From Selaginella moellendorffii (taxonomy: Eukaryota; Plantae; Lycopodiophyta): a stretch of 64,000 nt of DNA. The notes under the pieces were generated by a model. The model was not told the origin of the DNA. It did no database searches and saw only the letters and a program-made list of their open reading frames with translations. The position numbers were made by a program, and so were the translations under genes. Positions 6,863 to 34,745 of the stretch are shown piece after piece (position 1 is the stretch's first letter; every line of letters starts with the position of its first letter). Location: positions 39,467-103,466 of the forward strand of contig NW_003314351.1 of NCBI RefSeq assembly GCF_000143415.4, read 5' to 3'.

Positions 6863-7009
6863 GAAAGAAATATGGCTTCTTTTGTGTAATATTATGTGGT
6901 TGATGCAAAAGTTTGTAAAGGATTTGCAGTACTGTCAGAGTGCGAGGGGGGCATGGGGAAAATCCTTGCCACTTTTTCCAGTGAGCCTGATATTATTGTA
7001 GTTTAAAAC

Positions 7010-7310
7010 ACAAATAAGGTGGCCAAATCCCACTGCGTTGGCGAGCCCTGTCTGAGTCTTCCAGGAATCCATTCTGGGCATAGCACAGCAGTAGATTCGT
7101 CCATGACACGAGATCCTTGGCCGGCATTCTCCCTGGTGCGCGAGCTCCGTGATCATCGAGTTCCGTGTCACTCTGAGACGCGATCGAACATAGCCTGGCA
7201 GTCGCGGATCCGGGAGGCTGCCAAATATACGAGACAAGATCGCGGAACGCCATCCCATCAAACGTGTTCTTGGCGAGCGCAAGATGCCCGGACTGAGTAT
7301 ATCGATCGAA
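7010..7310 (-). pseudogene. PPR (PLS-type) gene fragment
   Basis: RMPAKDLVSWTNLLLCYAQNGFLEDS; paralogous to 15600-15870. Confidence 0.75.
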
Positions 7311-7789
7311 GAGCCGGGATGAACTAAGACCTCGGCGTATTATAATTAGATTTATAATTTATGCGTAGATTTATAAACTTGATTATTTCTAGTGACAATT
7401 CCAGTTAATTGTAATTTTATAGCTGCTTACATGTAGATAAGTGTATAGACAAGAGCTTCTAAAGTAATTCTAATAGCAAGCATCTTGCTCCGAGTTCCAA
7501 TCCCAAGAAAAAAGTTTGATTTAGCTTATAAGCCCAGAAAAGATGTTTTGCCCTGTTTGATTATATAAATTATTTATTGTTGCCCTTCAAACGTAACAGT
7601 AAAATAGCGGAACTTATTAATTATTTGATTTGTGGAAGTGCGTTTGAACGGCAGTGGATCGTAAAGTTGGAGGTGGACATTCCGATCCGGCCGCTAACAG
7701 CTCTTGTTAGCCTAACCAGACGCGCTCTTACTGGCTTAACTAACCAGACGCTCAAAACCATGAGAGTTTTACTTGTAAAGAGGGTTTTT

Positions 7790-9869: not shown

Positions 9870-10160
9870 TCTACAACCTGTGCTTAGCACTTCCACAACA
9901 ACAATAGAGTCTTGTGGAGAGAACAAACCATCTTGTTTCCCCACCTCCAGTCTGGATATACACCCAAATCATAGTCGCATAAAGAAAGCATAGGATCCAA
10001 CCAATCAGCTCACATATATCGTTGTGATATCCCCCCATGATTTGGAAAAGGCCAGGGCACGCCAAAACTTGCCAAATGATAAACCATGAGCGATTTGGGA
10101 CATATGTGTTTGCTAATGCACTAACCGCTCCAATAAAATACTAACCAGAATACAGCACCT
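9870..10160 (-). pseudogene. Half-MFS OCT-like pseudogene (exon 2 remnant)
   Basis: Reverse complement matches 6405-6800 (aggtgctgtattctggttagtatt, atgtcccaaatcgctcatggtttatc, atccagactggaggtggggaaac). Confidence 0.85.
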
Positions 10161-10500: not shown

Positions 10501-12126
10501 TTGGCATTGGGATTGAAGACATTTTGTCTAGCTAGTTTCTATCACTCCTAAACTAGAGATAACATTAGAGCTACTTTCTAAAAAGAAGATAATGAAGAAA
10601 AGTACATTTGCAAATGCAATAGTAATAACTTTTATGACATTGCATAGTCCATCTCCTAAATGTGTTTCAACTAAGAAAAATCCACATTTCCAGTTATATC
10701 AATCTAACACAAAATAATAATAATATATAGTAAATAAGAAACTAGATTATATAAGTTCATAATTCAATTTATGATGAAACAAGATATAAAACAAAAGTAG
10801 AGTTTTACAAATTATTAATAAAATTATAAGACAATAGCAAGTTTAAGCCAAGTTGAAGATGAATCAATTGTGCTTCAAGGATGACAATGAGAAAGTTCCA
10901 ACTTTATTTAAGTATCTGGCCTGGATTGATTGCAAAACATAAGTTAACTTTAGTTATAAGTTTATGAATTGTTGTTATTACTAATTTTTATAAGTACTTT
11001 TATAGTACTTTCTTGCAAAATTAAGGTTGAAATCATCTTTGGAAAAATTTATCATACCATTCAGATTTATGATTCAGATTCAGATTCAGAACTAAACTAT
11101 ATATAAAAGTGTTGTTTATATATATATAATTAAAAACTTGAAGGATAAACCAAGAACTATTTGAATTTTAAAACTTACATATATCAAACTCATATCTAGT
11201 ACTAAATGTATTCAATCAAGTTATTAAAAGAAAAAATGAAAAAAATTAATTAAAATACTTGTAAAGATGAATAATAGTTTTCTCTAAAGATGAATTCAAT
11301 TTTATTCTTGGATTTTTAGGAGAAAATCATTATGAATATATTAAATAGTGTTAAAATTATTGTGGATGTGCTGAAGGGAGATGATGGTGCCACTAAAAGA
11401 TGCAAATAAATGATACACTAATATATGTCAGCGATATCTACCGATGATCGCTGAGTTTTTTTGTGAAAAAAATATCCATCAAAACATAAAAAATTCACTA
11501 AAATTGTTATATGATTACATTCAACAACATTTAATTTACTTAATAATAGTGTTATTCATTTTTATTATTTAATTACTCAATGAGATAACATGGCTCAAAA
11601 AGATAGTGAAGAAGATAGTGCAACCATAAAAAAAAAGATTAATTAATAAAGAGAAATATTTTATGAGGGAAACATTTATTGTTGTTATACCACTCGCAAA
11701 AAATAGTGATATATTATTTATTGTTATTGATAGTGGCAATGTTTAAGGAAGTGATACTCTTCACATATATATTTAAATTTTACGATTTATAAGTGATAAT
11801 TTAATGAATCCTTTATCCCCCACTTTTAATACTCTTAGGGCTTTCCACTCTCAATGCGATTATTATAGTGAAGTGGAGTAGTGATTATAATAATTTTTAC
11901 CACTTAATTATTACTTTTTAAAGTTTCTTTTTTGTTTTTCGGCTCTTCAAAGTGATTGCCAAGTTTTTTGCTAAATGAGGATGAAGAATCATAATACTAT
12001 ATTCTTTGTTAAGACCACTTTTGATGTGAATGGTGAAAAAAAATCTAAAAGTCCTATTACCCAACTTTTGAAGTCTTAATTATAAATAATTTAAATAAAT
12101 AGAAAAAGAATTAATATTTCATAATA

Positions 12127-13572
12127 TATTAATATATGGAGTTTTTGTAGGGCTAGGGGATTTATGCTCATTATTGCAATATTTAATGGACACTTTTAAA
12201 TATGATTTATATGTAAATTGAATTAAAAAATGATATAAATGATGGCTTTCTTGTTTTTAAAATTATTTTTTCTATCATATTTAATTGAAATGTTAAAATT
12301 AAAAGAGGGAGTGGGTATGATTGCATTTACAATTTTCATTTGATTATTTGAGTAAATTATATTTTTATATACGATTGATATTAACAATTTTTTTGATCTA
12401 TTTCAACACTAAACACACATAGTTTTTAACAATGAAAACACTGAAACATGAACCTTCTGGGTATGATTTGTTTCAATGCTCTCCTCATTTGTTATTTTTA
12501 TAACGCTAACAATATTTTGTTATAGAGTAGATTTAGTATGTAATGGTATTTAGGGGTATCACAAAGCTCAAATTAATAGTCAATAGGCAACTAAAATCAA
12601 TCTGGATAATGTTAAAATCTTTATAAATATATTAAAAGGTGTTAAAATTATTGTAAATATGCTAGAGCAAAACACTACTAGTAATGCCACAAAGGGATGT
12701 AAGTGAGTGACATATTAATGTATACAATAAATATTTTTGTGAAGGAAATATTTATCCAAATGAAAACATTTCACCAAAATTATTATATAATTGTATGCAA
12801 CAATAAATGTTATTTATTTCAGTGTTTAATGAGATAAAATCGTTGAGTTGGCTCAACAAGGAGATAGTATAGCCTTAAAAAAAATGATAGATTAACTAAT
12901 TAAAAGAAATATTCATTTGATGATTTATGAGAAAAATTTTTGTTGTTGTTATGCCACTTGTATAATATAATAGTGTGTTATCTATTACAACTTATGGTAG
13001 CAATATTTAGGTAAATGGATGCTTTCACATGATATTCAAACTTTGGGATTTATAAATGATATTGCATTAAAAATAAAATTGCAAAATAAAAAATTTATTT
13101 TCCTTCTTGTAATATAGTGTTGACATTAGTTCTTGTATTAACAAATGTAATATTTAAATAACATGCACAAACATTTACCCATCATATATTAGCAATCATA
13201 TCAATTTGATTGAAGAAATTAAATAAGACAAAATAGTTAAGATATATAAAAAATAAAATAAAAACTCAATAGTTGAATTCCAAGAACTAATTGAACTGAA
13301 AATTTTAAGTATTTCAAGCTTAAATCCAATATTGCAAGGGATCATGTAGCTTTTAGAAAAAAAAAACTTAATTTTTTAAAAAAGAAAGAAACAGTAAAAC
13401 AAGAATATAAAATATATATTGGTTTAACAAAACACATTTTATAGTAGAAACAATTATTTTTAAAATAAAAAACCACCATTTATATCATTTTCAACTCAAT
13501 GTATATGCAAATTCAGATTTAATGCCCTAGGGTTTACAAACCCTAGCCCTACAAAAACTCTATATATTAATA
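12127..13572. mobile_element. AT-rich ~1.45-kb element bounded by 32-bp inverted repeats (putative non-autonomous DNA transposon)
   Basis: tattaatatatggagtttttgtagggctaggg (12127-12158) vs ccctagccctacaaaaactctatatattaata (13541-13572), 31/32 match; adjacent hairpin ctagggtttacaaaccctag. Confidence 0.5.
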
Positions 13573-13604
13573 CAAGATCTCTATAATTAAAGGTTGACAA
13601 ATAA

Positions 13605-13850
13605 ATTGTGGTAGCTTTTTACCTATTTATTGTGACTTAGTCTTTATGTTTTCACCATCTACATCACAAGAAAATTGCCCAAATGGTCTTTATTGTCAAA
13701 GAGATTGCACCTTGGCTGGGGTTTTATAATGGATTTCCTGGCTTATGCAAAAATTGGGCCAAAATTCTTTGCAATTCAATATTGTCAATTTGTTTTATTC
13801 ACTCAGGGATATATTATCGAAGGTAATATTACACTATCATAAAATATTAT
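13605..13850 (+). pseudogene. Half-MFS OCT-like pseudogene (exon 1 remnant)
   Basis: Matches 6040-6350 (tgcccaaatggt..tattgtcaaagagattgca, ggcttatgcaaaaattgggccaaaa). Confidence 0.85.
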
Positions 13851-13869
13851 TCCATTATTGAAATTTGTT

Positions 13870-14770
13870 GACCACGATCATCAAGTATAGCCCTCCACCA
13901 AAGCTTTTCCCCATGACACTAACATATGAGGAACCTTTGCATTGCATTCTGGAACAAAGTTGAGGTCATGGAAATTCGGAGTCACAGAACGATGGAAAGC
14001 AGCATCCACAGCTTACAATTGGACTATTACAAGGGATGTGCTTGGAGGTGAAGAAGACTTATTACCTCATAAAAGTAAGGATAGTGGCACTTTATGGCGC
14101 TGAGATATGGGGCCAGGCCTGCTAGCGAAGGAGTAGGACAAAGTCGAGGCTGTGCAACGAAGTTTCATTTGGGAAGAATTCAGCATCAACCTTGTGCCAT
14201 ATGTGATCATGGAGACAGGCCTCTTTTCCCTAGAAATACTCGCACGATCATCTACATCTGAAAGAGCAGAAGTTGGCAGTCACAGGACAGACAGGCGGCT
14301 GGTGGCATGACATGAAACAGGACCAAAAGAGTCGGTCTGAATCTCAACATCACAGAACGATTCCATGAAGATCTTGAATTCTGGACACACATCGTGCTAA
14401 TAAGATGGATCCAAGCCCAGAAGAACCACACAAAATACAAGCTCTACGTGGAGGAGATCAACCCAAACGAACAGGTGGGAACGGCTCTTTATGATCAGCT
14501 CTTTCCCTGGCGACAGAAACTCCTTGCACGTTACAGAACAGGTGATCATAGACTACTCGTGGAACTAGGATGAAGAACAAGACCAGCAAAGATTCCGCGA
14601 CATCTACAGCTTTGCCCAGTGTGTGGCATGTCCGTCGAGACAGTAACACATACGGTCAAGGAATGCTCAGGATACGACTCAGGCCGATCCCATGGGATAT
14701 GCCTGTAGCTAACATCCTTGGGACACCTGAAAACGCAGCGGAGATAACCAGGTTCCTGGAATAGATGGAG
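13870..14770 (+). mobile_element. Non-LTR retrotransposon (LINE) ORF2 3' remnant
   Basis: ALYGAEIWG..., METGLFSLE, and a C-terminal CCHC knuckle CPVCGMSVETVTHTVKEC; stops and frameshifts. Confidence 0.65.
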
Positions 14771-14949
14771 GTCCAGAGGCAAACACTTGTCAATGAAAGC
14801 ATACTTGTGTTGTTGGAGCTGGAAAATGAAAGGAAACAGCAGAACAGATGACACCAAACTTGCAGGGCCATACTCCAATCACCACAAACAAGCAACACAA
14901 CAGATGGGAGTGGGAACAATGATAAATGGGCAACAATCCGCGGCAGAAG

Positions 14950-16890
14950 AGGCAGCAAGCTCCCAGCAGCGACATCCAGATCACCATGTCTGGAAGGAAT
15001 GGCATCGAGTTGATGAGCTCCTTCGCACTCAGAGTTCTTCATGCAGCAATAGCGCTCTCTCCTCGGCACCATCTCAAAGTCTCGGCTGATTGAGACGAAG
15101 TGCTCCCAGCCCTTGGCAATGGCTGCACGAAGTTAAAACGCTCCGGAACGTCACCTTGTCCAGCGTGACGCCCTCGAGATTCATAAGATGGAAGACTTCC
15201 ACTGCTCGATCGTAGTGCCCGTCGTCCCAAGCTGAGCATCTTCATGCTCTTAATCACACTCCTGGCGGTGCCGAGATGGCCCAAATTGACGTAAACTTGC
15301 ATGAGAGCTGTCCAGCAGACGATGGTCTTGTGTGGGATCTCGTGGAAGAACCTCACGGCTCCGTCAAAGTGCCCATTCTCGGCATACGCGAGAAGCAGCT
15401 CCACGAGACTAGATTCTTCTCCGACACTTGATCAAAGATGTTCTTCGTCCTTGGTGGCAGTAAGCCTGCACCATTGCCGTCCACGCCACCACGTCCTGAT
15501 CCGGCATGGAATCAAAGATCTCTCTTGCGTTTGCAAAATCTCCTCTTTGGGTATTCTCGTAGTTCTTGCCACTGCGTTGGTGAAGGGGAGCCGATGGAAC
15601 GCCCTGTCCAATTTTTCCAGGAATCATTCTGCGCGTAGCACAGCAGTAGATTCGTCCACGACACGGCCGGCATTCTATCAAAGATCGATTTTGCTGCCTC
15701 GTTTTGCCCCTGCGCGAGCGCAGTGATCATTGAGTTCCATATCACGGCCTGGCGCTCTGGGACACGATCGATCATCGCCTGACAGTGGATGCTGCCACAT
15801 ATCCAGCGATCATCGAGTTCCACGAGACAAGATCATGAAACTCCATCCCGTCAAACGTGTCTTGGCAAGCTCAAGTTGCCCGAACTGGGCATACAGTGTA
15901 ATGGGCGATTTCCAAGAGACCATGTCATGATCCGCCATGGAATCGAAGATCTTCTTGTCCTAGCCGAGATTGGAGCTCCGAATATAGGATTTCACAACCA
16001 CGTTACACGAGATTCCAGTGGGGCAATCGATCAAAGAGGTTCCCTCCCTCACGTCGTGGTGGCACATTCGATCGAAGAACATAGCCTTGGCCGCCCAGCA
16101 GCCCTCACAAGATCCACCGGGAAATGCCGCTCTCTAGCCCTGTGATCGCCCGACATTGCTCTCTGGGAAGAACCCAAAGTTTTGGTTCTTGCGATCATAG
16201 GCGACCATTGATCGCGGGCGATTTGGATCTTCCCCAGATGGCTGCAAGCCGAAAGGATGGTGATGAACGACACAGGATCGATCCTCACTCCACCATCGAG
16301 CGTGGCCTCGTTGGCCGCGTGATCGAGGCTCGAGCTGTGCTCGCCGCAATGCCCACGAGAGTGGATATCTCCCGCATAGCCGGAGAGGATCGCGTTCCAG
16401 GTGAAAACGTTCCATTTCGACATTTGCTGCCGGATCTTGAGGGCGTCCTCCATTCTCCCGGCCTGGCCGAGCATTGCGACAAGCATATCAAGTCCCTTGT
16501 GGGCATTTGGTGGTGGATCGCCATCGACATGCCCGTCCTGGGCATAGGCGGCAGCGATTGATGTAGGCAACTGTGGCATTCGATCAAACAGCAGCTTCGC
16601 TCTGTCCGGGATGCCGTTTTCCATCAGCCCATTCCAAGGCACGAGATTCTACTGGGGGAAAACATCCTCTCGGCCTCTTCTACAAGGCATAGCCCGACAC
16701 TATTGTTGTCCACGAATCCAAGTCCCTCGTTACCATTGTCTCAAAGACACCTCGAGCCTCCACCAAATTCCCGATTTGCATGAAAGCTCTCACCAACGCA
16801 GTTGATAGTATTGAGGTCATTGGCTTTCTTTTTTCTTTGATTTTGGCTTCCTTGCCCAAGTCCCTCCGAGCTTGCTTGTTTCCTTACAGA
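14950..16890 (-). pseudogene. Degraded PLS-class PPR gene(s)
   Basis: Repeated AREIFDSMPDQDVVAWTAM, LLAYAENGHFDGA, FDRMP, FITILSACSHLG, MPFLPDMVIWMSLLGAC (E-domain start) across shifting frames. Confidence 0.85.
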
Positions 16891-17645
16891 CACGAAGCAT
16901 CGAGCTGTACAAGACAGGGTTCTATGCCAAAAGAGCTCAATTGCTACATTCCGAGGCTTCATCATGGGCACTTCTGTGGCATTTGTGTGGAAAAGGTAGC
17001 AGTGTTTCTTAGAGGATAGAATGGAAGACAATCAGGTAGTCTGAGTTTGTAAGAAATGATAGGACTGCTCAAACATGTCTTCGGGGTCCAAGGAATTGGA
17101 TTTAGAAAAGGTGGTCATTTGAGTATATGCGTGTCTACAAATGTTATCCTTACTGAGGAAGGCATGGGATGTGGATTCCTACACTCAGAAGCTAAACAAA
17201 ACATGCAATCAAGATCAAATATCAGAACTCACTATGTTCTACATTTGGATCCTGATGCTCCAACTCGAGAAGGCTTACAGTTGCATCCTGAAGATCAGGT
17301 ACTACGCTCTTACTGGTCCTCTTCTTACATGTATCATATTTATCACAGAAACTGGAAGATGGTCTTTTGGAAAGCTGGAAGAAAAACAGAAGCGCAGGAC
17401 CTGAGTCCAACAGGGATTAGGTACATGAAAACGTTTATAGACGTCTTCAGCAAGAAGTGCTCTAAAACTTTTTCGTGTTTCTTGTGATACTAGAGGAAAG
17501 AATCCAAGATACCGCACTACTCAAATCCAAGCTCCTGGTGGTTCTCTTGTATTGAATTAGTGACACAGCTATCTTTCATTCTCAGGCGTGGAAAGCTGGC
17601 TGCATGACTGCATGCTCACCTCATTTAACGAGCGCGCTTTAGACG
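16880..17645 (+). pseudogene. NUP107 pseudogene fragment carrying the PrfB insert
   Basis: Matches intact gene ~63370-62500 (HLDPDAPTREGLQLHPEDQ); PrfB-derived insert at ~17407-17545. Confidence 0.9.
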
Positions 17646-18178
17646 TTAGGACACATGGCGCAGATCAATTTGCTTGGGGAGTTTTCTCTTGGTAGTAAAC
17701 ATTCTGTGGAAGTTCCATATTTCCGCTACAAGGAACACACCATCTTTATGACTCAAACATACTTTAGTGCTATTTCCACTATGCTTGACAATTTTTCTCG
17801 AAGTACAAAGACAGCAAGCAAAGATGGTGCAGTGTATCAGGGCGATTGACAGTGCTCATGTTTCAGCAAGAAATCAAACGTGATGATAGCCTCTAAGGTT
17901 TGTTTGTGTTGCAAATGTATGAGTGCTTATAAGGCTGTTGCTCAACATTTGAACTATTGCAATAATTTTAGATATTATATAGAGAATTTATAATAATTTC
18001 CAGTGCATCAACGTTTGGTTTGTTATTTCTAATCCACTTGATCAATAAATAATAAACATGTTTGTAATTTATAAAAACAAGATAGAATAAAAAAGAATAT
18101 ACTGTTTAGAACATTTTATAAATTATAAACATGTTTATAAATTAATAAATGCAATATTAATTTAAATTAATAACAACA

Positions 18179-18770
18179 TTAGTATCCTAGAATATCCATG
18201 CATATTCTAGGTATATTCACTTGTAAATCTACCCTAACCTCAATATTAACTATAACTAATACCACCATAATACATATTGGGAGCAAGGATAAGAAGACTA
18301 TTTCTGAGAACATACCCCAAAATGATATGGAAGAAGTTATTGGATATGGTTGTTCTCTGAGTTTCTTTAGCTCTAAATACCACCTTATAACTGATGATGT
18401 CTGCACATGAATGTGCTACTGCAGAGATCACTTGTAAAGCAATGAACCATCACCGATATAAAACACATGTGCTTGTAAACGCAGTAGCTCTCCAATAAGA
18501 AAGCTAATCAACATGCATAACTTGTAACGGATTCCTATGGCAACTGGAACAAATTGTTATAAAGGTTCATAAATAAATCTAGCTTCTCCAGACATAGCCA
18601 AGTGATAGAATGGCATATAGATATGGAGTAAAGCACAGTATCTAATTGCAGATTGTTTGGCCCAATTTTTCTAGTTCTGATGTAAGGAGAATAAAAACCC
18701 CAATGGTAATTAGGATGTAGTGCATTACAGCTCTTCTGACAATGAGAAACACCACATAAACGCTAATTCC
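18179..18770 (-). pseudogene. Half-MFS OCT-like pseudogene
   Basis: Close to 19580-20355 (tgtaatgcactacatcctaatta, gtgatctctgc.gtagcacattc) but frameshifted, with the intron donor lost. Confidence 0.85.
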
Positions 18771-19289
18771 AATGAAATTAGTATGAAATTATTGGTGTTT
18801 GCCATAAACCTTAACCTTATAAGAAGATCTTTTTATAAGCTTTAGGGAGATGGAGGAATGTGAGTGCGGGATGGAGGGAGCGAGAAGACCCTGACAACAA
18901 ACTTACAAACTTGTTTGCACAGTCTCATGTTTCTTGTTGGGCACCCCATGACTACCAAAACAGAATATTCAATTCAATTCAAGTTAGTGCTAATCTTTTT
19001 TCTGTCTTTTTTCAGATATTTCTTCCTTGTTCTGTTATGAAGGTTGAAAGGACGATAATTGATGCTCTCAGAAGTAAGATCAATTACACAGGCCATTAGG
19101 ACGTTTTTGGTTATTTGCATGCAAGTCTTCCCTCAATTTTGTTCTTTCTTACTTGACGCAGCCTGTTCACGATTCCTGAAGCTCATATTCAAGTGCTAAG
19201 GGCAGGACTATCAAGTAAAGAAATTAGCCTCTCAAACTAATGAAGCTCTTGTGCTAATGAAGCTCAAACTCTGTTCATAGTTTAAAGAG

Positions 19290-19450
19290 AAACTTCAAAT
19301 TTTTGCTCACCTCCATAGCAGGTAAAGACTATTTTGGAAAAGCTTGTGAAGCAAAGTAGTTGAACTGTGATAGCTAGAAATGCTCCAATGAGATGTAAGA
19401 GCTGAAACTAGACAATCCAGCTAAAAATCAACCACACATCATTTCTCAGC
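19290..19450 (-). pseudogene. C-terminal remnant of SWEET-like membrane gene
   Basis: VWLIFSWIV*FQLLHLIGAFLAITVQ...CYGGEQ matches AWLVFSSIVEYQILHIVGACLAVAVQ...CYGGEQ at 22630-22760. Confidence 0.8.
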
Positions 19451-19579
19451 TTATCTTCCAAACTTCCCATACTGCAATGGATTGAGCTAGGTGCAAGATA
19501 GGATTGATTTTCCACAAACTTCAGTTAATATATCCACTAATTGTAGATTCTAAAATATTTACAAACAGAATTTACTATG

Positions 19580-20355
19580 TTACAATTCATTAGCTATTCT
19601 TCCATTGTTACTTCTAATATTAACTATAATTAATACCACCATTTCCACCACCAGCATCATGGTAAGAAATGAGTCCATAATAAATATCAGCCTATTTCCC
19701 CACCTCCAGTCAGAATACATATGAATACATATTGGGACCAAGGGTAGAAAGAGTAATTCAATGAATATAGCCACTAACGATATGGCATAAGTTCTTTGAT
19801 ATGGTTCTTCACTGCGCTTCTTTATCTCTATGCACCACCTTATAGCTGATGATGTCCCTGCGTAGGAATGTGCTACCGCAGAGATCACTTGTACAGCAAT
19901 AAACCATGACCGATGTGAAACATATGTGCTTGTAAGCGCACTAGCTCCTCCAATAACAAAGCTAACCAACATACATAACTTGTATTGGAAGCGTGTAGCA
20001 AATCCCATGGCAACTGAAATAAATTGTTAAGTGTATTCTTAAATAAATCTAGCTTACCTCCAGCCACATAGCCCAGTGATAGCAAAGTATATAGATGTGG
20101 AATGAAGCAAGGAAGTTGCCAATATCGAATTGCAGAATAATTTAGCCCAATCCTCGCAGCTCCGATGTAGCAGGAATAGAAATCCCAATGATAATTAGGA
20201 TGTAGTGCATTACAGCTCTTTTTGCAATGAGAAACACCGTGTGGGCAATCCCATTTTGGAGGGTAAAGAGTGATAACTATGGTGTATACATAAAAGCTAA
20301 TTGCCCAAGTCGAGAAAATTGAAATAAGAACGAAATACCACCAGAAGTTTGCCAT
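19580..20355 (-). CDS. Half-MFS OCT/SLC22-like 6-TM membrane protein (~243 aa; exons 20355-20058, 20013-19580)
   Basis: 44-nt GT-AG intron (20057-20014) at the same position as in the 6012 paralog restores one open frame; conserved PPKW.CP.GV..C...CNAL, YSAIRYWQL.C, DWRWGNR. Confidence 0.7.
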
Positions 20356-21089
20356 CCTTATTAAAGGGATATAATCTAAGATCTATTTATAGGGTTTTCG
20401 GCATAATCCTCCTTTTGGAAATTGTCTATAACTTTTCAAAAAAGATCTCGGTTTTTCCAAAAGAAGCGCGAACTTTTTGTAGGGTTAGGGTTTCGGCTCG
20501 GCCAGTCTCGAAAGGTATGGCGCCGCAGATTGAGCAATACTGGTGCGCACATCGCCTCTCGAATGGTCTCTAAATCCTTTTCCAATCTAGCTTTATTTAT
20601 GGAGAATCGGTGGCTGATCTTGGCTGTTTTCGATTTAGTAGCTATGTGATTGGAACGTTGGAGCAGCTCAATATCCGGGTGCTTGAGCTTACTTCTTGGA
20701 ATTTTTCCGTCCATTCCTTCCAGTTTTTTTCATTTTTGTACTCGTGACTCTTTTTTTCTCGATGCCAGAAGTAAGGGAGCAGTTTCTATCTGTAACTGTG
20801 AGGCTGTTTCTTTTCTTGTTTTCTGTAGACAGCCGTCTAAGTTTCTGACGATACTGTGGCAGCATGTCTTCTCTGCAGACCTCGGAGCTAAGACTGCAGA
20901 AGTCTTGTACGAGGTAGACTTGATCTTTTTCGCAGTTGAGATTCGACTTCGAAAAGCAAGAGCATGGTATGAAATTTAATTTTCTGTGCTTATTGTAGAT
21001 CCAGAGGTATTGATGATGGCTTTGAATCCAGTGTCAAAGGAGGCCAAGGCGTCCAAGACAAGGTTGGTCTTTTTCTCTTTTCCCGACTT

Positions 21090-21330
21090 AAGACGATGGG
21101 ACTGAGCTTGAGAAGAGAGGTCGTACCGTCGTTTGCACGAATCCTTCTTCACACGTCCCTGGGACGTCAAATGCTGAGACAGGTGCTGCGCTCGGAGATC
21201 GGACATTGCGTGGCATGACACGACCAAGCTCGGGATCCCAGTAAGGAGTTTTGCTTTTTTTTTTCTCTTTCTCGTGAGATGATCTTTGTTGTCGTCTATT
21301 CTAGTGGAGGGTTTCATGGATGCCGAAATG
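21090..21330 (+). pseudogene. Alpha/beta-hydrolase gene fragment (At1g52750/At1g80280-like)
   Basis: REVVPSFARILLHTSLGRQMLRQVLRSEI...AWHDTTKL...VEG, recalled as characteristic of that family; isolated exons. Confidence 0.55.
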
Positions 21331-22566
21331 GATCACAAGTTCGAGAAGCTTATAGTATCCTCTCCCGCATGAAGGAAATTATGGGTGATAAGTTTTGACT
21401 TGAGCTTCTCTATGACTACAGTGATCACTTCTTTTATCAGACTCTAATACGCTTCGCCAAGAGCAAAAGGTATAATTTGACCCGCAGTCTTGAGACAGTG
21501 CCGTGGTTTAGGTGAATCTAACTTGACATTATTGGTTGTTGTTATGTACCGATCCGGGTAAGCTATTCTTTTTTCTCTTGATTTCCACAACACTGACAGT
21601 TTATTATGAGGAGCTTAACCAGTGTTGCGAGAAGGAACCTGGAACCAGAGCAAAGGCATATTAAAACACGATTCCGGGCATAGCTGACATTGTCACCAGA
21701 GTAGCGCTTGGACGATTTGTCATTTTCGTTTGTACATCATCACGCAAGTCAAAGTCAAGTCAAAGTCAAAGTCATTTGATCATATTCTCTTGATAAATGC
21801 TTTAGAGCTCTTTCAAGACGATCACATCATCTTGTGAAAGGTACGCACGGACATGAAAGGTGAGTCTGATTAGCGCACTACTTTGTTGGCGAGTTCTCAT
21901 TTCTTACTTACAGAATGCCGCTTCGATTCGGCCGTCACGTCGTAACAGGAAGAGCCGACGCTTCGATTAAGCTGCATTTGGTCTTTTTTAGTGTTCATCT
22001 TTTTTCCTCATCTTGACCTGCTCGTTCGGACGAGGACGATGCACCAGAGTCTTCCACCTTGTTTATTTAATCTCAGGACATCTCTCGATTTCACTCAAGT
22101 AAGCAAATTAGCCTTTGAAACTCCTCTAATGTGAATTGATGACTACAGGCACTTGCCGAGCTGTCAAAGTGATTCAAGTAAGCTGGTTTTCGTGGAACTT
22201 GGACAGTGGTTTTCCTTTTCAGGATGGGGAGTTTTTTCTTGCTGGTAAGGAAGTTCTAAGTTCATGCTAATAGGATACACGCTTCAGTGGTATGGAAGCA
22301 TGGTGCTCTCAACCAGGTGCGCTATGCTTGATATTTCTGTGTTACAGCAAGCAAGTTCGGGATGGAAAATTTTCAGATGAAGCCACAAGAAAAGATCAGA
22401 GACTACTTCTTGCTGGCCACTTTGTGATGTAGGCAGCGAATCAAACGTTAAACCAGTACTCTGCACTCGCAACGAAAAACGATCATCCAGTGACGCCTTG
22501 TTTCCACTGGAATTGTCTTTTAGTTCTTTTAACGCATGGTTGATTGTCCCTTCGGTGTTCCTTCGT

Positions 22567-23620
22567 TCAACACAGTGCGCACAGGCCTGTGAATTCAAAG
22601 ATCGCGATATAGAAACAAGAGAACTTTCAGATTTGCTCACCTCCATAGCACTTTGAAACGAAGCTTACAAAGTAGATGGCCTGAACTGCAACAGCCAAAC
22701 AAGCTCCCACGATATGGAGAATTTGGTACTCAACGATGGAGCTAAAAACCAACCACGCAACTCCAGAGAGCAACGAGCAAGCAGAAGCTATCACCGTGGA
22801 GGCCTCATGAGTGAACGGGAGGAGACATATCACCCTCATCACGAAAGGAACTACAGCTGAGACCGTGTAAACAGCTGCTGTGGCCCAGCCCTTCTTTCCC
22901 TTCAAACGACGACATGCGATGCCCATGAGAGGGTAGAAGAACGGGATGAGAGCTGTGAGCAGTATCGTCATACACCCTTTCCTCCGCTGCTTCTCGATGT
23001 GTCCAAGCCCGACCAGGAATGAATGCAGGAAACAAAAGGCCGATGCGGCACAGATCGCGGTGGCAATGAGAGTTAGATCGTGCCCGTCTTGCGTCCACTT
23101 TTGACACATCGAGATGGCATTTGCCAGAGACAAGAAGGAAGTAAGCAGTGCAAGTGCCCTCTGAGATTGTGAAGGGCTGGCAGGGATTACCTCCGCTTGG
23201 GACTGTGCTGTTGCGGCCTGATCCATCTCCACTGCCACCAATCCTCCAGCTATGGCCCCCGTCTCTAGCTCCTCATTCGTGGCCGCCGTTGTGCCAGGCT
23301 TGCGCCTCCTCAGAATGTTCCTTGCCTGAGCTGTTGCCCTCGCAATGCAGCTCTCCACAGCTAGTTGTCTGGCACGCAGCCGTGCTCTCAACCCAGCTGG
23401 ACAAAACGATCACAGAAGACGAGAGAAACGTAAATCCTGATGCAGCAAGACCAAGAAGGAACCACCGCGAAGATGTGATCTTGTCATCGCTGACGCTAGA
23501 TCTGGCCTCATGGGCAAACACATCCAGATCCACAGGCGAGAGAGAATCCAGGAGAGAATCTAGGTAGAAACTAGCCATGGCCACAAGCGAGAGGAGGAGC
23601 GTCTTTGCTAAAACCCCCAT
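22567..23620 (-). pseudogene. Divergent SWEET/MtN3-like multi-pass membrane gene with N-terminal 2-TM extension; one apparent frameshift near 23390-23275
   Basis: Two overlapping ORFs in different frames; GWATAAVYTVSAVVPFVMRVI..PF, SLLSGVAWLVFSSI and HIVGACLAVAVQAIYF follow the spacing of SWEET TM5-7; possible last intron 22641-22585. Confidence 0.5.
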
Positions 23621-23699
23621 CCTGCGATACCTAGGAAATGCTGTGTAACCTAGGAACTGCGTGTATGTTTCTGTGAAGAAACACACTCGATCAGCGCGA

Positions 23700-25530
23700 G
23701 TGTTTGCAGCTCATCCAATCTGCAAGAAACCTCCACTCCATCAAGCAAATCCACACTAGCATTTGCCATTTGCTCCAGAGCTTATTTTTCTGCAGCAAAA
23801 GACCTTTGCTTGTTCTTCATGTAGCTGGAGTTTTCATTTGTTGATAGTGTGTGTTAAAAGAACGAAGTTTCGATGAATGTGAAGAATTGAGAGGCAGGCA
23901 GCAACGTACCCAATCAAGAAAAATCTTGGTAGTTGCAGTTCTCGGGCAGTACTGCAGAAGTACAGAGCTGCTGTTGCTAAGCATCCAAAAAGCGAGAGAG
24001 ATCCGGCCTTTTTGTCCGCCACGACGTGGACAAAATGCTATTGCACGAGGACGAGAAAAATCAAGATCAGTATTGTCTTTCATGAAAGATATACCTGTGT
24101 AGCTCTATCTCATTAGCTCCGAATCTGGTGGCCTGAGGAGTAAAGAACAGAAAGTTGCTGGATGCGAAGGCAAACACAATATGTTATCCAGTTAAATCAA
24201 CACAAACTTTGAGGCACAGGCACCAAAGTACAGTATCTTAATGTGTCTAATAAAAAAAGTCTTCATTTCAGATATCTGCAGAAGTTCAGTCTGCTGCTTC
24301 ATTTAATGACTGCTTCAGGTGTCCCAAAAGTGCTTCCACACCTCCCGGAATGTCTACGCCATAGTGACGTTAATTCTCGCTATGGACTTCTTACTGCCAA
24401 GAACAACAAAAAATCGACAGCAGTAATTAATGATCATGACCTGCTTGAGGAGTAAAGCACATACATTGCACATACATTGCAGAGAATGTCCTGTCCGTAT
24501 GTTTCCAGTGTGAGACAGGGAAGTAAGATGTCTAGAAACGTTTTCATGTACCTGAGCAACGAAGAGCAATCCCTGTTGGACACGGGTCCTGCGCTTCTCC
24601 TTTTCTTCCAGCTCGGATGAGCTTCCACGCATCTTCCAAAAGACTATCTTCCAGTTTCTGCGATAAATATGATACATGTAAGAAGAGGACCAGTAAGAGC
24701 GTAGTACCTGATCTTCTGGATGCAACTGTAAGCCTTCTCGAGTTGGAGCACCAATGTCGAACAGAGTGAGTTCCAATATTTTTTTGATAGCCCGTTTTGT
24801 TTGATCCCACAAGCCTAGCCTCTAAGCCCGCACCCTATCCCTTCCTCTATAACGATAACATTTGCATGCATATACTCAACGGAAGAGCATCACCTTCTTT
24901 TCTAAATCCAATTCCTTGGACGCCAGACTCGCGAGACAAGACGAGGGCATGTTTGAGCAGTCGCACCGGTTCTTATAAACGCGTGGTTGCTTTCTGCCAA
25001 ACATTTTTCTTAGGTGAAACCACAAAAGGAAGAGAACATAGGAAATACCTGATTGTCTTCCGTGATATCCTCTAAGAAACAGTAAAGTCAGACCCGTTGA
25101 AACTTAATAAGCGACGCTACCTTTTCCATACAAATGGAAGTGCGCATGACTGAAGTAGAGCTCTGTCTTCTATAGCTCGATGCTTCGTAGTTGCCTCGTC
25201 TCTGTAAAGAAAAAGCTGCTGAGTTCCAGTCGTTCCCAGAAAATTGTTTCACCTGTGACTGCCTGCGCTAGATCCCGGCAAATGTCTTCAAACTCGCTCA
25301 AGAGCTCGGGCAGAGACGCGAAGCCTGCCAAAGAAAAACATAAGCAGAGTTGTATGACTTGAGAAACGAAAGTGGTAGGCCGGGTAGACATGTATCCACG
25401 CCAGAAGCAGAGCGCTCAAATGAATCTTGGAAGATGCCGTGTCCTGTGGATTGTCGCATTTCACATTCTCAGAGAGGACGAGAAAAACATACCTGTATCC
25501 CCGAGATTTTCGTCCACCGTGCCCGCCGCT
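23700..25530 (-). pseudogene. NUP107 pseudogene spanning most of the gene, compressed by deletions; carries the start of the PrfB insert
   Basis: Collinear with intact gene from ~63950 to ~60600 (LPELLSEFEDICRDLA, WDQTKRAIKK, APTREGLQLHPEDQ, FLDWVRCCL). Confidence 0.9.
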
Positions 25531-25786
25531 CAATCCCAAAAGCCCTAAATCCTAGATTTACTCTTATTTTCCTGTTTGCAGCAATATCATGATTTTAAGC
25601 AGAAGAAAACAGAGAATTTCTGGAAAAACCCTTATTCAGTATAAGCTAGCTATATGAATTTATAATTTAAAACATTTCAATTATTTATTTAATGCGAAAT
25701 ATTTTTTCAAATTAGAAAAATAATTTAAATTGTATTAAAACTGTAATTCTCTGAAATGCTTATATATTGTTTTAATATTTTAAATT

Positions 25787-26880
25787 AACCTCTTTGATCG
25801 AATGCCCCACTGGAATCTCGTGTAACGTGGTCGTGAAATCTTATATCCGGAGCTCCAATATCGGCCAGGACAAGAGGATCTTCAATTCCATGGCGGATCA
25901 TGACATCGTCTCTTGGAAATCGCCTATTACGCTGTATGCCCAGTTCGGGCAACTTGAGCTTGCCAAGACACGTTTGACGGGATGGAGTTTCGTGATCTTG
26001 TCTCGTGGAACTCGATGATCGCTGGATATGTGGCAGCATCCACTGTAAGGCGATGATCGATCGTGTTCCAGAGCGCCAGGCCGTGATATGGAACTCAATG
26101 ATCACTGCGCTCGCGCAGGGGCAAAACGAGGCAGCAAAATCGATCTTTGATAGAATGCCGGCCGTGTCGTGGACGAATCTACTGCTGTGCTACGCGCAGA
26201 ATGATTCCTGGAAAAATTGGACAGGGCGTTCCATCGGCTCCCCTTCACCAACGCAGTGGCAAGAACTACGAGAATACCCAAAGAGGAGATTTTGCCAACG
26301 CAAGAGAGATCTTTGATTCCATGCCGGATCAGGACGTGGTGGCATGGACGGTGATGGTGCAGGCTTACTGCCACCAAGGACGAAGAACATCTTTGATCAA
26401 GTGTTGGAGAAGAATCTAGTCTCGTGGAGCTGCTTCTCGCGTATGCCGAGAATGGGCACTTTGACGGGGCGGTGAGGTTCTTCCACGAGATCCCGCACAA
26501 GACCATCGTCTGCTGGACAGCTCTCATGCAAGTTTACGTCAATTTGGGCGATCTCGGCACCGCCAGGAGTGTGATTAAGAGCATGAAGATGCTCAGCTTG
26601 GGACGACGGGCACTACGATCGAGCAGTGGAAGTCTTCCATCTTATGAATCTCGAGGGCGTCAAGCTGGACAAGGTGACGTTCCGGAGCGTTTTAACTTCG
26701 TGCAGCCATTGCCAAGGGCTGGGAGCACTTCGTCTCAATCAACCGAGACTTTGAGATGGTGCCGAGGAGAGAACGCTATTGCTGCATGAAGAACTCTGAG
26801 TGCGAAGGAGCTCATCAACTCGATGCCATTCCTTCCAGACATGGTGATCTGGATGTCGCTGCTGGGAGCTTGCTGCCTCT
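25787..26880 (+). pseudogene. Degraded PLS PPR (duplicate of 14950-16041)
   Basis: Near-identical ORF pairs, e.g. 26424-26789 vs 15039-15404. Confidence 0.85.
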
Positions 26881-27059
26881 TCTGCCGCGGATTGTTGCCC
26901 ATTTATCATTGTTCCCACTCCCATCTGTTGTGTTGCTTGTTTGTGGTGATTGGAGTATGGCCCTGCAAGTTTGGTGTCATCTGTTCTGTTGTTTCCTTTC
27001 ATTTTCCAGCTCCAACAACACGTGTATGCTTGCATTGACAAGTGTTTGCCTCTGGACCT

Positions 27060-27950
27060 CCATCTATTCCAGGAACCTGGTTATCTCCGCTGCGTTTTCA
27101 GGTGTCCCAAGGATGTTAGCTACAGGCATATCCCATTGGATCGGCCTGAGTCGGAACTCATCGTATCCTGAGCATTCCTTGACCGTATGTGTTACTGTCT
27201 CGATGGACATGCCACACACTGGGCAAACCTGTAGATGTCGCGGAATCTTTGCTGGTCTTGTTCTTCGTCCTAGTTCCACGAGTAGTCTATGATCACCTGT
27301 TCTGTAACGTGCAAGGAGTTTCTGTCGCTAGGGAAAGAGCTGATCATAAACAGCCGTTCCCACCTGTTCGTTTGGGTTGATCTCCTCCACATAGAGCTGT
27401 TCTTCTGGGCTTGGATCCATCTTATTAGCACGATGTGTGTCCAGAATTCAAGATCTTCATGGAATCGTTCTGTGATGTTGAGATTCAGACCGAGTCTTTT
27501 GGTCCTGTTTCATGTCATGCCACCAGCCGCCTGTCTGTCCTGTGACTGCCAACTTCTGCTCTTTCAGATGTAGATGATCGTGCGAGTATTTCTAGGGAAA
27601 AGAGGCCTGTCTCCATGATCACATATGGCACAAGGTTGATGCTGAATTCTTCCCAAATGAAACTTCGTTGCACAGCCTCGACTTTGTCCTACTCCTTCGC
27701 TAGCAGGCCTGGCCCCATATCTCAGCGCCATAAAGCGCCACTATCCTTACTTTTATGAGGTAATAAGTCTTCTTCACAGCACATCCCTTGTAATAGTCCA
27801 ATTGTAAGCTGTGGATGCTGCTTTCCATCGTTTTGTGACTCCGAATTTCCATGGCCTCAACTTTGTTCCAGAATGCAATGCAAAGGTTCCTCGTATGTTA
27901 GTGTCATGGGGAAAAGCTTTGGTGGAGGGCTATACTTGATGATCGTGGCT
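27060..27950 (-). mobile_element. LINE ORF2 3' remnant (duplicate)
   Basis: MELGRRTRPAKIPRHLQVCPVCGMSIETVTHTVKECSGY CCHC motif. Confidence 0.65.
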
Positions 27951-27974
27951 CAATCAACAAATTTCAATAATGGA

Positions 27975-28232
27975 ATAATATTTTATGATAGTGTAATATT
28001 ACCTTCAATAATATATCCCACTGAATATATATGGTGAGTGAACAAAACAAATTGAAAATATTGAATTGCAAAGAATTTTGGCCCAATTTTTGCATAATCC
28101 AGGAAATCCTTTATAAAACCCCAGCCAGGGTGCAATTTCTTTGACAATAAAGACCATTTGGGCAATTTTCTTGTGATGTAGATGGTGAAAACATAAAGAC
28201 TAAGTCACAATAAATAGGTAAAATGCTACCAC
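27975..28232 (-). pseudogene. Half-MFS OCT-like exon 1 remnant (duplicate)
   Basis: WGFIKDFLDYAKIGPKFFAIQYFQFVLFTHHIYSVGYII. Confidence 0.85.
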
Positions 28233-30742
28233 AATTTAATAGTCTTATTTGTCAACCCTTAATTATAGAGATCTTGTATTAATATATAAGGGCTAGGGTT
28301 TGTAAACCCTAGGGCATTCACTATTACAATGCTAAATACACACTCTTAAATCTGAATTTGCATATACATTGAGTTGAAAATGATATAAATGGTGGTTTTT
28401 TGTTTTTAAAATAATTTTTTCTACAATAAGATGTGTTTTGTTAAACCAATATATATTTTATATTCTTGTTTTACTGTTTCTTTCTTTTTTTAAAAATTAG
28501 GTTTTTTTATTCTAAAAGCTGCATGATCCCTTGCAATATTCCATATAAGCTTGAAATACTTAAATTTTTAAGTTCAGTTAGTTCTTGGAATTCAACTATT
28601 GAGTTTTTATTTATATCTTATTATTCAACTATTGAGTTTTTATATATCTTAACTATTTTGTCTTATCTAATTTCTTCAATCAAATTGATATGAGTGCTAA
28701 TATATGATGGGTAAATGCTTTTGTACGTTATTTAAATATTATATTTGTTAATACAAGAACTAATGTCAACACTATATTACAAAAAGGAAGATAAATTTTT
28801 TATTTTGCAATTTTATTTTATTGCAATATCATTTGTAAATCCCAAAGTTTGAACATCATGTGAAAGCATCATTTACCTAAATATTGCTACCATAAGTTGT
28901 AATAAAAAACACACTATGATATTCTACAAGTGGCATAATAACAACAATTTTTTTTTTCATAAGTCATCAAATGATTATTTTTCCTTTAATTAATTAATCT
29001 ATATTTTTTTTAAGGCTACACTATCTCCTTTTTGAGCCAACTCAATGATATTATCTCATTAAACACTGAAATAAATAACATTTACTGTTGCATACAATTA
29101 TATAATAATTTTGGTGAAATGTTTTTGTTTGGATAGACATTTCCTTCACAAAACAAATTATTGTATACATTAATATATCACTCACTTGCATCACTTTGTG
29201 GCATTACTATTAGTGTTTCCCTCTAGCATATTTACAATAATTTTAACACTTTTTAATATATTCATAAAGATTTTAACATTATCCAGATTGATTTTGGTTG
29301 CATATTGACTATTGATTTGAGCTTTGTGATACCCCTAAATACCATTGCATATTAAATTTACTCTATAGCAAAATATTTTTAACGCCATAAAAATAACAAA
29401 TGAGGAGAGCATTGAAACAAATCATAGCCAGAAGATTCATGTTTCAGTGTTTTCATTGTTAAAAACTATATGTGTTTAATGTTGAAATAGATAAAAAAAA
29501 TTGTTAATATCAATAGTATATAAAAATATAATTTATTCAAATAGTCAAATGAAAATTGTAAATGCAATCATACCCACTCCCTCTTTTAATTTTAACATTT
29601 TAATTAAATATGATAGAAAAAATAATTTTAAAAACAAGAAACCATCATTTATATTATTTTTAATTCAATTTACATATAAATCATATTTAAAAGTGTGCAT
29701 TAAATATTTCAATAATGACTGCAAATCCCCTAGCCCTACAAAAACTCCATATATTAGTATATTATGAAATATGAGTTCATTCACGCTTCTTTTTCCAATT
29801 ATTTAAATTACTTATAATTAAGACTTTAAAAGTTGGGTAATAGGACTTTTAGAGTTTTTTTTCACCATTCACATCAAAAGTGGTCTTAATAAAGAATATA
29901 GTATTATGATTATTCATCCCCATTTAGCAGAAAAACTTAGTAATCACTTTGAAGAGCCCAAAAATAAAAAAGAAACTTTAAAAAATAGAAATTAATTAAT
30001 AAAAATTATTATAATCGTTACTCCACTTCACTATGATAATCACATTGAGAGTGGAAAGCCCCAAGAGTATCAAAAGAGGGGGATAGAGGACTCAATAAAT
30101 TATCACCTATAAATTATAAAATTTAAACATATATGTGAAAAACATCACTTATTTAAATATTAGCACAACAATAAATAATATACCAATATCTTTTGCAAGT
30201 GGTATAATAACAATAAATGTCTCCCTCATAAAACATCTCCTTTTATTAATTAATCTTTTTTTTTATGGTTGCACTATTTTCTCCACTATCTCTTTAAGCT
30301 ATGTTATCTCATTGAATAAATAAATAATAAAAATGAATAACACTATTATTAAGTAAATTAAATGTTGTTGAATGTAATCATATAACAATTTTAGTGAATT
30401 TTTTATGTTTTGATGGATATTTTCTTCACAAAAAAACTCATTACATACATTAGTGTATCATTCATTTGCATCCTTTAATGGTACCATCATCTTCTTTCGG
30501 CATATCCACAATAATTTTAACACTATTTAATATATTTATAATAATTTTCTTCTAAAAATCCAAGAATGAAATTGAATTCATGTTTAGAAAAAACTATTAT
30601 TCATCTTTATAAGTATTTTAATTAATTTATTTTTCATTTTTTCTTTTAATAACTACGTGATTAAATACATTTAGTACTAGATATAAGTTTGATATATGTA
30701 AGTTTTTAAATTCAAATAGTTTTTGGCTTATCCTTAAAGTTT

Positions 30743-30749
<7 letters not shown>

Positions 30750-30817
<68 letters not shown>
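30750..30817. repeat. (TA)n microsatellite
   Basis: ~34 TA units; the donor copy (~11118-11128) has only a short run. Confidence 0.95.
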
Positions 30818-30820
<3 letters not shown>

Positions 30821-31370
30821 AACACTTTTATATATAATTTGGTTTCTCTCTAAGCACTCATAAATCTGAATGGTATAATAAATTTTTCCAAAGATGATTT
30901 CAACCTTAATTTTGCAAGAAAGTACTATAAAAGTACTTATAAAAATTAGTAATAACAACAATTCATAAACTTATAACTAAAGTTAACTTATGTTTTGCAA
31001 TCAATCCAGGCTAGATACTTAAATAAAGTTGGAACTTTCTCATTGTCATCCTTGAAACACAATTGATTCATTTTCAACTTGGCTTAAACTTGCTATTTTC
31101 TTATAATTTTATTAATAAGTTTTAAAACTCTACTTTGGGTATATGTCTTGTTTCATCATGAATTGAATTATCAACTTATATAAGTAAGTTTCTTATTTAC
31201 TATATGTTATTATTGATATAGCTGGAAATGTGGATTTTTCTTAGTTGAAACACATTAGGAGATGGACTATGCAATGTCATAGAAGTTATTACTATTGCAT
31301 TTGCAAATGTACTTTTCTTCATTATCTTCTTTTTAGAAAGTAGCTCTAATGTTATCTCTAGTTTAGGAGT

Positions 31371-32550
31371 GTTTAGCTTCTGAGTGTAGGAGTCCACATC
31401 CCATGCCTTCCTCAGTAAGGATAACATTTGTAGACACACATATACTCAAATGACCACCTTTTCTAAATCCAATTCCTTGGACATGTTTGAGCAGTCCTAT
31501 CATTTCTTACAAATGCCACAGAAGTACCCATGATGAAGCCTCGGAATGTAGCAATTGAGCTCTTTTGGCATAGAACCCTGTCTTCTACACCTCGATGCTT
31601 CGTGTCTGTAAGGAAACAAGCAAGCTCGGAGGGACTTGGGCAAGGAAGCCAAAATCAAAGAAAAAAGAAAGCCAATGACCTCAATACTATCAACTGCGTT
31701 GGTGAGAGCTTTCATGCAAATCGGGAATTTGGTGGAGGCTCGAGGTGTGTTTGAGACAATGGTGACGAGGGACTTGGATTCGTGGACAGCAATAGTGTCG
31801 GGCTATGCCTTGTAGAAGAGGCCGAGAGGATGTTTTCCCCCAGTAGAATCTCGTGCCTTGGAATGGGCTGATGGAAAACGGCATCCCGGACAGAGCGAAG
31901 CTGCTGTTTGATCGAATGCCACAGTTGCCTACATCAATCGCTGCCGCCTATGCCCAGGACGGGCATGTCGATGGCGATCCACCACCAAATGCCCACAAGG
32001 GACTTGATATCCGGGAGAATGGAGGACGCCCTCAAGATCCGGCAGCAAATGTCGAGATGGAACGTTTTCACCTGGAACGCGATCCTCTCCGGCTATGCGG
32101 GAGATATCCACTCTCGTGGGCATTGCGGCGAGCACAGCTCGAGCCTCGATCACGCGGCCATTGCGAGCGTAATCGTGCATCAAACTCGTCCAGAACTTCT
32201 CCTGCGGGATGCTGTCAAACGATCGCATCTTGCGTGATGGAAGCATATGCCCAAACTGAGCAAGACATCCATCTCTTCCACGAGGCCACGCTCGATGGTG
32301 GAGTGAGGATCGATCCTGTGTCGTTCATCACCATCCTCTCGGCTTGCAGCCATCTGGGGAAGATCCAAATCGCCCGCGATCAATGGTCGCCTATGATTGC
32401 AAGAACCAAAACTTTGGGTTCTTCCCAGAGAGCAATGTCGGGCGATCACAGGGCTAGAGAGCGGCATTTCCCGGTGGATCTCGTGAGGGCTGCTGGGCGG
32501 CCAAGGCTATTTTCTTCGATCGAATGTGCCACCGCGACGTGAGGGAGGGA
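31371..32550. pseudogene. NUP107 fragment (31371-31625, minus) plus PPR fragments (31620-32550, plus); block B of the duplicate
   Basis: Reverse complement of 16041-17197 with independent indels. Confidence 0.85.
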
Positions 32551-33115
32551 TTCCCAATACTTTGGCTTTGGTGTTGGAAACAATATGCCACATTATAAAA
32601 TAGTTTATGACATTAATATAATATACATATAATCTCACTTCTTATATAGATAAGTTAAATATAATCTCTAAAATTAGCTAATAATATCTTACCTGTTTTA
32701 CTTTTATTGGATTTTTCATTTTCTTGTAAATTCAATGCCTTTTGTGAAAATATTTTAGATACTAAATTATACTTATACAATACTAATTTGTGATTAAATA
32801 GATAGATAGATAGCTGTTTATATTATAAATATCAGGGAATACAAATGAATAAATTCAGTCATGATTACGTGCACAATTCTTATGCAGGGACACCATCAGT
32901 TATGAGGTGAGAAATGCAGTAATGGTCTTTTTACCCTATTTCCATAGCACTTCAAATTTTAAAGGTCATAAACGAGTATATACGTATTCTCAATTTGAAG
33001 TTATTTATTATAGTCTTTGGTAAGTACTGCATTGGTTTACCTTCTTTCGTTCTTGGGGTCTCTGCTGGGGTGAAGAAGGCAAACCGAGAAACAAAATCCC
33101 CTCCATTCGATTGCC

Positions 33116-34745
<1,630 letters not shown>

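Follow-up and report, generated by a model that had tools for sequence, protein, structure and literature searches.

The locus described here raises the question of whether a rotated and inverted duplicate in the spikemoss Selaginella moellendorffii is the footprint of an extrachromosomal DNA circle that re-integrated close to its donor, as a first-pass annotation had proposed. The window analysed is a 64,000-nucleotide stretch of scaffold GL377655.1, in which record position equals window position plus 39,466. Within it we distinguish a left flank (L), donor block A (10543-16041), donor block B (16042-17198), a spacer M (17199-25786) and a right flank (R), with ^ denoting the reverse complement. 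The relation between donor and copy was established by self-BLAST of the window and by global alignment of the rotated donor against the copy, and a second haplotype scaffold, GL377638.1, was located via allelic proteins; in that haplotype the donor was compared from window-equivalent position 16895 rightward. A protein encoded in the spacer is SELMODRAFT_447409, whose locus is identical to the window. Our reading is that the locus is a permuted duplicate with a probable circular intermediate.

Both alignments give the order L-A-B-M-A^-B^-R. Donor A, on the plus strand, aligns to 31371-25787 on the minus strand, and donor B (16041-17198) aligns to 32550-31370, also on the minus strand; when base 32550, whose assignment is ambiguous, is set aside, B is matched from 16042 and its copy spans 31370-32549. 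The copy thus reads B-A, and it holds exactly one unit of 6,654 bp, as had first been described. It was also said to lie about 9 kb away as an inverted insertion. The inversion and the proximity stand, and the exact gap is the 8,588 bp of M, which both self-BLAST and the second haplotype place outside the duplicated unit. The description of the duplicate as base-precise applies to its junctions and not to its bodies, which differ by 253 substitutions in 6,472 columns (3.9%) and by approximately 35 indels.

Three junctions define the copy. At the internal head-to-tail junction, J2 (CA at 31370-31371, minus strand; reverse complement gaagctaaa-CA-ctcctaaac), the right end of the donor (gctaaaCA|aaac) is fused to its left end (ttctat|CActcc), and global alignment bears out the 2-bp CA microhomology first noticed there, with the corresponding closure points at 17197-17198 and 10543-10544 of the plus strand. 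The outer junctions, J1 (25786|25787) and J3 (~32550), converge on donor position 16041 +/-1 and share at most one base, such that in the donor the copy's two outer ends lie side by side, overlapping by 0-1 bp. The joins show only microhomology or short indels, namely the CA at closure and, for the outer ends, no more than 3 bp. With the A at 32550, which is ambiguous, counted as target sequence, the overlap in the donor falls to zero and a 3-bp ATT flanks the insert on each side (25784-25786 and 32550-32552), immediately before the start of inverted A at 25787 and after the end of inverted B at 32549; this ATT is possibly a target duplication, of 3 bp at most. The empty site taaatt|ttccc proposed earlier is one among several equally possible reconstructions, and a target duplication would fit as well. 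J1 is marked by an abrupt step in GC content, from 19% to 50% at 25788, and an AT-rich imperfect hairpin lies just outside it (25666-25739). The closure points themselves (10523-10563 versus 17178-17218) lie in an imperfect 25-bp similarity of a strength reached by ~1% of random local pairs; the CA junction is out of register with it.

Which of the two blocks is the original can be judged from homology that runs across the borders of the unit. Donor NUP107 homology crosses 17198 (17039-17407 versus the intact gene at 63098-62663, 75%), as it also does in the second haplotype, and ends at 31374 in the copy. At the other informative position, 16041, a paralogous PPR-DYW pseudogene on scaffold GL377598.1 reads ...AFAREG-DITRSM-SLLDQMPH where the donor reads ...HHDV-REG-NLFDRLPH. 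On the B side, the paralog matches all eight of the bases that border the break, in a position 19 bp upstream of the A-side anchor (p about 0.003, from shuffles and from random PPR positions). No such similarity to the paralog was found for the end of the spacer or for the right flank (p 0.71 and 0.90), and a PPR-like interpretation of that flank's first 40 bp, to which the paralog gives no support, was discarded. Because the paralog is colinear at 16041 and J1 is an abrupt compositional step, A|B is the ancestral order and J1 is new. The earlier claim that the left block is ancestral and the right block derived is borne out at both positions. At the left end, NUP107 homology within A was not traceable across 10543, and we make no call on the polarity of that end.

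The PPR motif had also been described as intact across 16041, and in this respect the annotation has to be corrected. Relative to the GL377598.1 paralog, the donor lacks ~19 bp (15 bp in a gapped alignment) exactly at this point, though the sides are colinear, and the opening point of the permutation (16041-16042) thus coincides with a donor deletion, which the paralog, at 67%, is too distant to date. The donor shows 11 gaps in 1,078 bases versus the paralog, at which density an opening point placed at random would fall within 3 bp of a gap ~3% of the time. Counting the ambiguous base 32550 as target sequence makes the ends of the copy correspond exactly to both sides of the donor deletion. 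A metagenome scan for the opening-point motif returned one unrelated chance match only.

J1, J2 and J3 are all present in the second haplotype, where the orientation and the continuity from donor B into the spacer are also unchanged; it has in addition undergone later deletions of its own. Misassembly, which had been named as the outcome that would undo the observation, was checked against this scaffold and is excluded, since all three junctions recur in a diverged and separately assembled haplotype. Neither haplotype scaffold contains an empty site, the second being likewise filled. Donor and copy differ by ~2% substitutions in the GC-rich parts and by 6.8% in the AT-rich part, and 119 bp at 32161-32279 is present only in the copy, having later been lost by the donor. 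Private substitutions number 99 in the haplotype-1 donor and 140 and 70 in the two haplotype copies, a near-star pattern, and the GC-rich divergence between donor and copy (1.5-2.1%) equals that between the haplotype flanks (1.1-2.8%). Because of this equivalence, the duplication appears to be about as old as the haplotype split, or to precede it shortly, and the near-star pattern together with the similar divergence therefore leaves little time for a multi-step history. Only 300 bp can be aligned across all four copies, and within it 0 sites group donors against copies, one derived dinucleotide is common to the donor and copy of haplotype 1, and one 9-bp deletion is common to the haplotype-2 donor and the haplotype-1 copy. 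This deletion sits between short GTC repeats, and its independent recurrence is conceivable.

Several further differences among the copies were observed. The haplotype-1 copy carries (TA)34 at 30750-30817, where the donor has (TA)6 and the haplotype-2 copy (TA)8, a microsatellite expansion after the duplication. Private substitutions of the haplotype-1 copy are in excess at ~29900-30650, the copy of donor 11250-12000 (52 versus 13 and 13), which possibly marks a conversion tract or exchange with another copy. The AT-rich segment 10543-13900 and its copies (24-27% GC), which include AT-eroded NUP107 exon sequence, diverge ~3x faster than the GC-rich part; methylation-driven decay would be our guess as to the cause. 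The haplotype-2 copy of B (local 15838-16435) is missing ~470 bp through several deletions, indicating a high rate of small deletion.

We tentatively regard a re-inserted circle as the best single explanation of these data. In such a scenario, a 6,654-bp copy of 10543-17198 would have been closed into a circle by end joining through the 2-bp CA microhomology, whether it came straight from a sister chromatid or from re-replicated DNA or had popped out of a transient tandem duplication. The donor would have been kept on, or restored from, the sister or homologue, or else left behind after tandem pop-out. The circle would then have been broken at 16041/16042 and ligated by end joining, in inverted orientation, into a break 8.6 kb away in AT-rich DNA beside the imperfect hairpin, with a target duplication of no more than 3 bp. 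This would have been a single event at or shortly before the divergence of the sequenced haplotypes, followed by neutral decay. We favour the circle because the B-A order, the single unit, the CA closure and outer ends within 1 bp of each other match the signature of the human duplicates termed cSDPs and of the cattle KIT duplications, and it suits the short time window because the divergence between donor and copy is similar to that between haplotypes. The ancestral state of the donor at 17198, its colinearity with the paralog at 16041 and the GC step at J1 also speak for it.

The comparison with human cSDPs and with duplications mediated by extrachromosomal circular DNA (eccDNA) is close (PMC7450558, PMC7188851). 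Closure microhomologies of 1-2 bp and integration scars of a few bp are typical of cSDPs (Chicote et al. 2020, PMC7450558), and the spikemoss locus resembles them in the change from A-B to B-A, in its single unit, its 2-bp closure and its small scars, and in having neither long homology nor transposon ends. It differs in scale, with a unit of 6.65 kb versus 22-3,918 kb, and in distance, with 8.6 kb from the donor versus 0.09-58 Mb or another chromosome, a proximity that leaves linear routes open. It differs also in that the spikemoss donor is deleted at the opening point and no outgroup empty site is available. According to the summary given in PMC7450558, permuted order has likewise been ascribed to a circle for the cattle KIT Cs6/Cs29 alleles of colour-sidedness, tilapia vasa and a five-ORF cluster (open reading frames) of wine yeasts; as that source presents them, cattle KIT shares the 2-bp microhomology at closure, and in all three systems functional genes moved far, in cattle with a phenotype, whereas the spikemoss block is pseudogene debris. 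Among plants, the Arabidopsis model in which flanking repeats allow circles to pop out (Woodhouse et al. 2010, PMC2869330) likewise proposes that re-inserting circles move genes. There, however, closure and insertion proceed by homology, through repeats over 30 bp and with no permutation, in contrast to the end joining, homology of 3 bp or less and new opening point seen in spikemoss. Work on Arabidopsis eccDNA did not tie its large duplications to circles (PMC10462705).

Several considerations weigh against a circle. The opening point falls on a donor deletion, a coincidence that happens ~3% of the time by chance and is not expected from a plain circle. Inversion and adjacency of the copy are exactly what a tandem duplication followed by inversion and flip requires, and random integration of a circle does not predict them; Takahashi and Innan (2020) treat nearby cases on the same chromosome as ambiguous (PMC7188851). 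Two discordant sites in the four-way alignment suggest later exchange between donor and copy, which would weaken the argument from timing. Neither a circle nor an empty site was observed, and junction PCR alone cannot reveal a circle because the chromosomal copy carries the same junction. Of the original interpretation, polarity, unit length, microhomology closure and the lack of transposon ends all stand. A circle is not uniquely implied, as ring-free routes give the same sequence, and because the permuted copy is inverted and nearby, the closed circle that we infer is not readable from block order.

The weights that we place on the competing mechanisms are our judgement and not computed values. 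Among routes that need no circle, a tandem duplication followed by a two-break inversion and a homologous flip between inverted repeats seems to us possible but doubtful. A microhomology-mediated tandem duplication (L-A-B-A-B-M-R) would create the CA junction, inversion breaks at 16041 in one copy and at 25786 would create both outer junctions, and recombination between the inverted repeats, either the 5.5-kb A/A^ or the 1.2-kb B/B^, would flip the interior to the observed order. Enumeration finds two such three-step paths to the exact order with the same three junctions. This route predicts both the inversion and the proximity and passes only through heritable linear chromosomes, and the observed state, alone of the three, lacks direct repeats and hence resists collapse. 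The dinucleotide and the 9-bp deletion are signs that the repeats can recombine, and the region, with its six NUP107 fragments, has been repeatedly duplicated and inverted. The three operations of this route are also those of the circle in its pop-out variant, taken in a different order. Set against this, the divergence between donor and copy does not exceed that between haplotypes, such that, unless conversion reset the clock, three steps would have to be accommodated within a short interval; the two haplotypes are alike in state, and the donor scar is left unexplained here too. A tandem A-B-A-B array, from which B-A might have been donated, was found neither in the window nor in the other loci examined. 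The scar would be explained by a second ring-free route, which we consider unlikely, in which the donor was cut at 16041, losing ~19 bp, together with a break at 25786, and no closed circle ever formed. The broken donor ends would have been used twice, being rejoined to leave the scar (with a 1-bp G microhomology) and also joined to both acceptor ends, while the CA junction would have arisen by a template switch of the microhomology-mediated break-induced replication or fork stalling and template switching (MMBIR/FoSTeS) type, or from the outer ends of a sister-chromatid fragment already cut mid-way; the intermediate would be a linear B-A molecule. One lesion would then account for unit length, opening site and scar, the ends of the copy matching both sides of the deletion when the ambiguous A goes to the target (chance overlap ~3%), and the 25-bp similarity at the closure points (~1% of random pairs) would suit strand invasion, though the junction is out of register. 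The cost is four junctions in one event. Moreover, the pseudogene is rich in old deletions, another of which lies 8 bp away and is common to all copies, so that the scar may predate the event; the distant paralog (67%) provides no date for it, and the coincidence was spotted post hoc.

The remaining explanations are far weaker. An inversion with duplicated breakpoints, by staggered breaks or by a two-switch duplication-inversion-duplication, would start from L-A-M^-B^-R, with only A|B and the CA junction new. This model calls for only two new junctions, and inverted duplications at both breakpoints are documented to arise in this way (Ranz et al. 2007, PMC1885836); the outcome looks the same, with A-B and an inverted B-A on either side of a single-copy middle. 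An older unit at 7036-9145 also places PPR(-) beside NUP107(+). The model requires, however, that J1 and J3 be ancestral and A|B new, and spikemoss fails on both counts: the paralog runs colinear through A|B (p about 0.003) and resembles neither the end of the spacer nor the right flank (p 0.71 and 0.90), J1 is an abrupt compositional step, and the spacer of the older unit (7302-7801) does not align to the J1 flank. We consider it largely refuted and very improbable. We find it hard to credit a transposase-driven event, whether a Helitron circle or alternative transposition of CACTA or hAT elements with re-replication as in maize composite insertions. The left end does begin CACTC, a 3-bp ATT target duplication is possible, and reversed-ends transposition of maize Ac likewise yields local plant duplications with microhomology at the internal joint (PMC4270019). 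Those insertions need transposon termini at their outer ends and an 8-bp target duplication, both of which are lacking in spikemoss, where no pair of ends shares terminal inverted repeats, the outer ends are PPR coding sequence with only the possible ATT repeat, and the CACTC end is internal with NUP107-derived sequence ~50 bp from it. The hallmarks of a Helitron (5' TC, a 3' hairpin followed by CTRR, a CTRR/TC joint and an A|T target) are absent from the junction sequences on either strand. The earlier statement that no transposase is involved is consistent with this lack of transposon ends at any junction. The S. moellendorffii assembly is not long-read based, which favours an artefact. The copies nevertheless differ by 2-7% as well as by indels, and the three junctions are found again in a diverged haplotype that was assembled separately and has since acquired deletions of its own; we give this explanation almost no credence.

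The duplicated unit holds only pseudogene debris; no working gene is affected and no function is evident. Block A consists of AT-rich decayed DNA, a LINE (long interspersed nuclear element) fragment and the 3' part of a PPR pseudogene, and block B of PPR pseudogene pieces and the start of a NUP107 fragment. Near the left end of A is an AT-eroded NUP107 fragment (10590-10921, minus), which would argue against this end being a transposon terminus. Nested within A is an old element with ~170-bp imperfect terminal inverted repeats (12127-13572, found by self-BLAST) that ends at no junction, followed by a decayed LINE-like 3' fragment with a CxxC zinc-finger-like tail in translation (13950-14850, plus), its class being inferred from this motif. 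The donor also holds a mosaic PLS-type PPR pseudogene with many frameshifts and deletions (14900-16700, minus), and a NUP107 pseudogene fragment spans the right end of the donor (16894-17650, plus). No Rfam family was found within 9000-34000.

Along with these, the window contains a full-length, apparently intact NUP107 gene (~59700-63960, minus) and at least six NUP107 fragments in both orientations, in the intervals 6-1059, 7802-9145, 10590-10921, 16894-17650 and 23774-25523. Small multi-pass membrane-protein genes or fragments also occur in both orientations (6006-6862, 9893-10160, 18269-18755 and 19580-20355), and because of the number and orientations of both sets we consider the region to have been repeatedly rearranged. 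At the window edge, NUP107 pieces 6-245 and 378-865 are out of gene order, the 3' end preceding the middle, and the 3' piece occurs again at 992-1059, an arrangement suggestive of a further duplication, tandem or permuted. No alignment across J1 or J3 was obtained with the older unit at 7036-9145. Scaffold GL377598.1 (local 4830-8744, 14440-15806, 20334-20478 and 25050-25187) likewise combines PPR-DYW pseudogenes with NUP107 fragments, and a third scaffold encodes a further NUP107 fragment; the PPR-NUP107 unit thus seems to be dispersed in the genome. Database look-ups of the protein of this third-scaffold fragment and of the open reading frame at 6359-6859 returned no record. To the right of the copy, ~570 bp from J3, a triosephosphate isomerase gene model (33116-34983, minus) encodes 324 aa in both haplotypes and is apparently undisturbed. 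Elsewhere, an imperfect ~680-bp inverted repeat lies at 3639-4315 (arms 3639-3849 and 4118-4315, ~79% identical), and the interval separating the BTB gene from the AMP-binding-enzyme gene is ~5 kb longer in haplotype 2 (local 11319-16834 versus window 44869-46872), the additional DNA including duplicated parts of both genes.

That extrachromosomal circles re-enter the germ line is ordinarily argued, at the sequence level, from permuted duplicates. Our coverage of the literature, which is incomplete, turned up cases resolved to the base for human, cattle, fish and yeast and no plant equivalent. The locus taken alone is an old, neutral rearrangement that duplicates pseudogene fragments without functional consequence; as a lycophyte example, it adds to a thin plant record. 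It also counsels caution, in that nearby inverted permuted copies need to be checked for donor scars and flip states. It is conceivable, if unlikely, that some duplicates described as circularly permuted, including this one, did not arise from closed circles, and that a donor break set the permutation point, its broken ends were used twice, and one repair event laid down both the local inverted B-A copy and the donor scar. If this were true and recurrent in S. moellendorffii, it would constitute a route of plant duplication that may be read from donor scars, orientation and distance.

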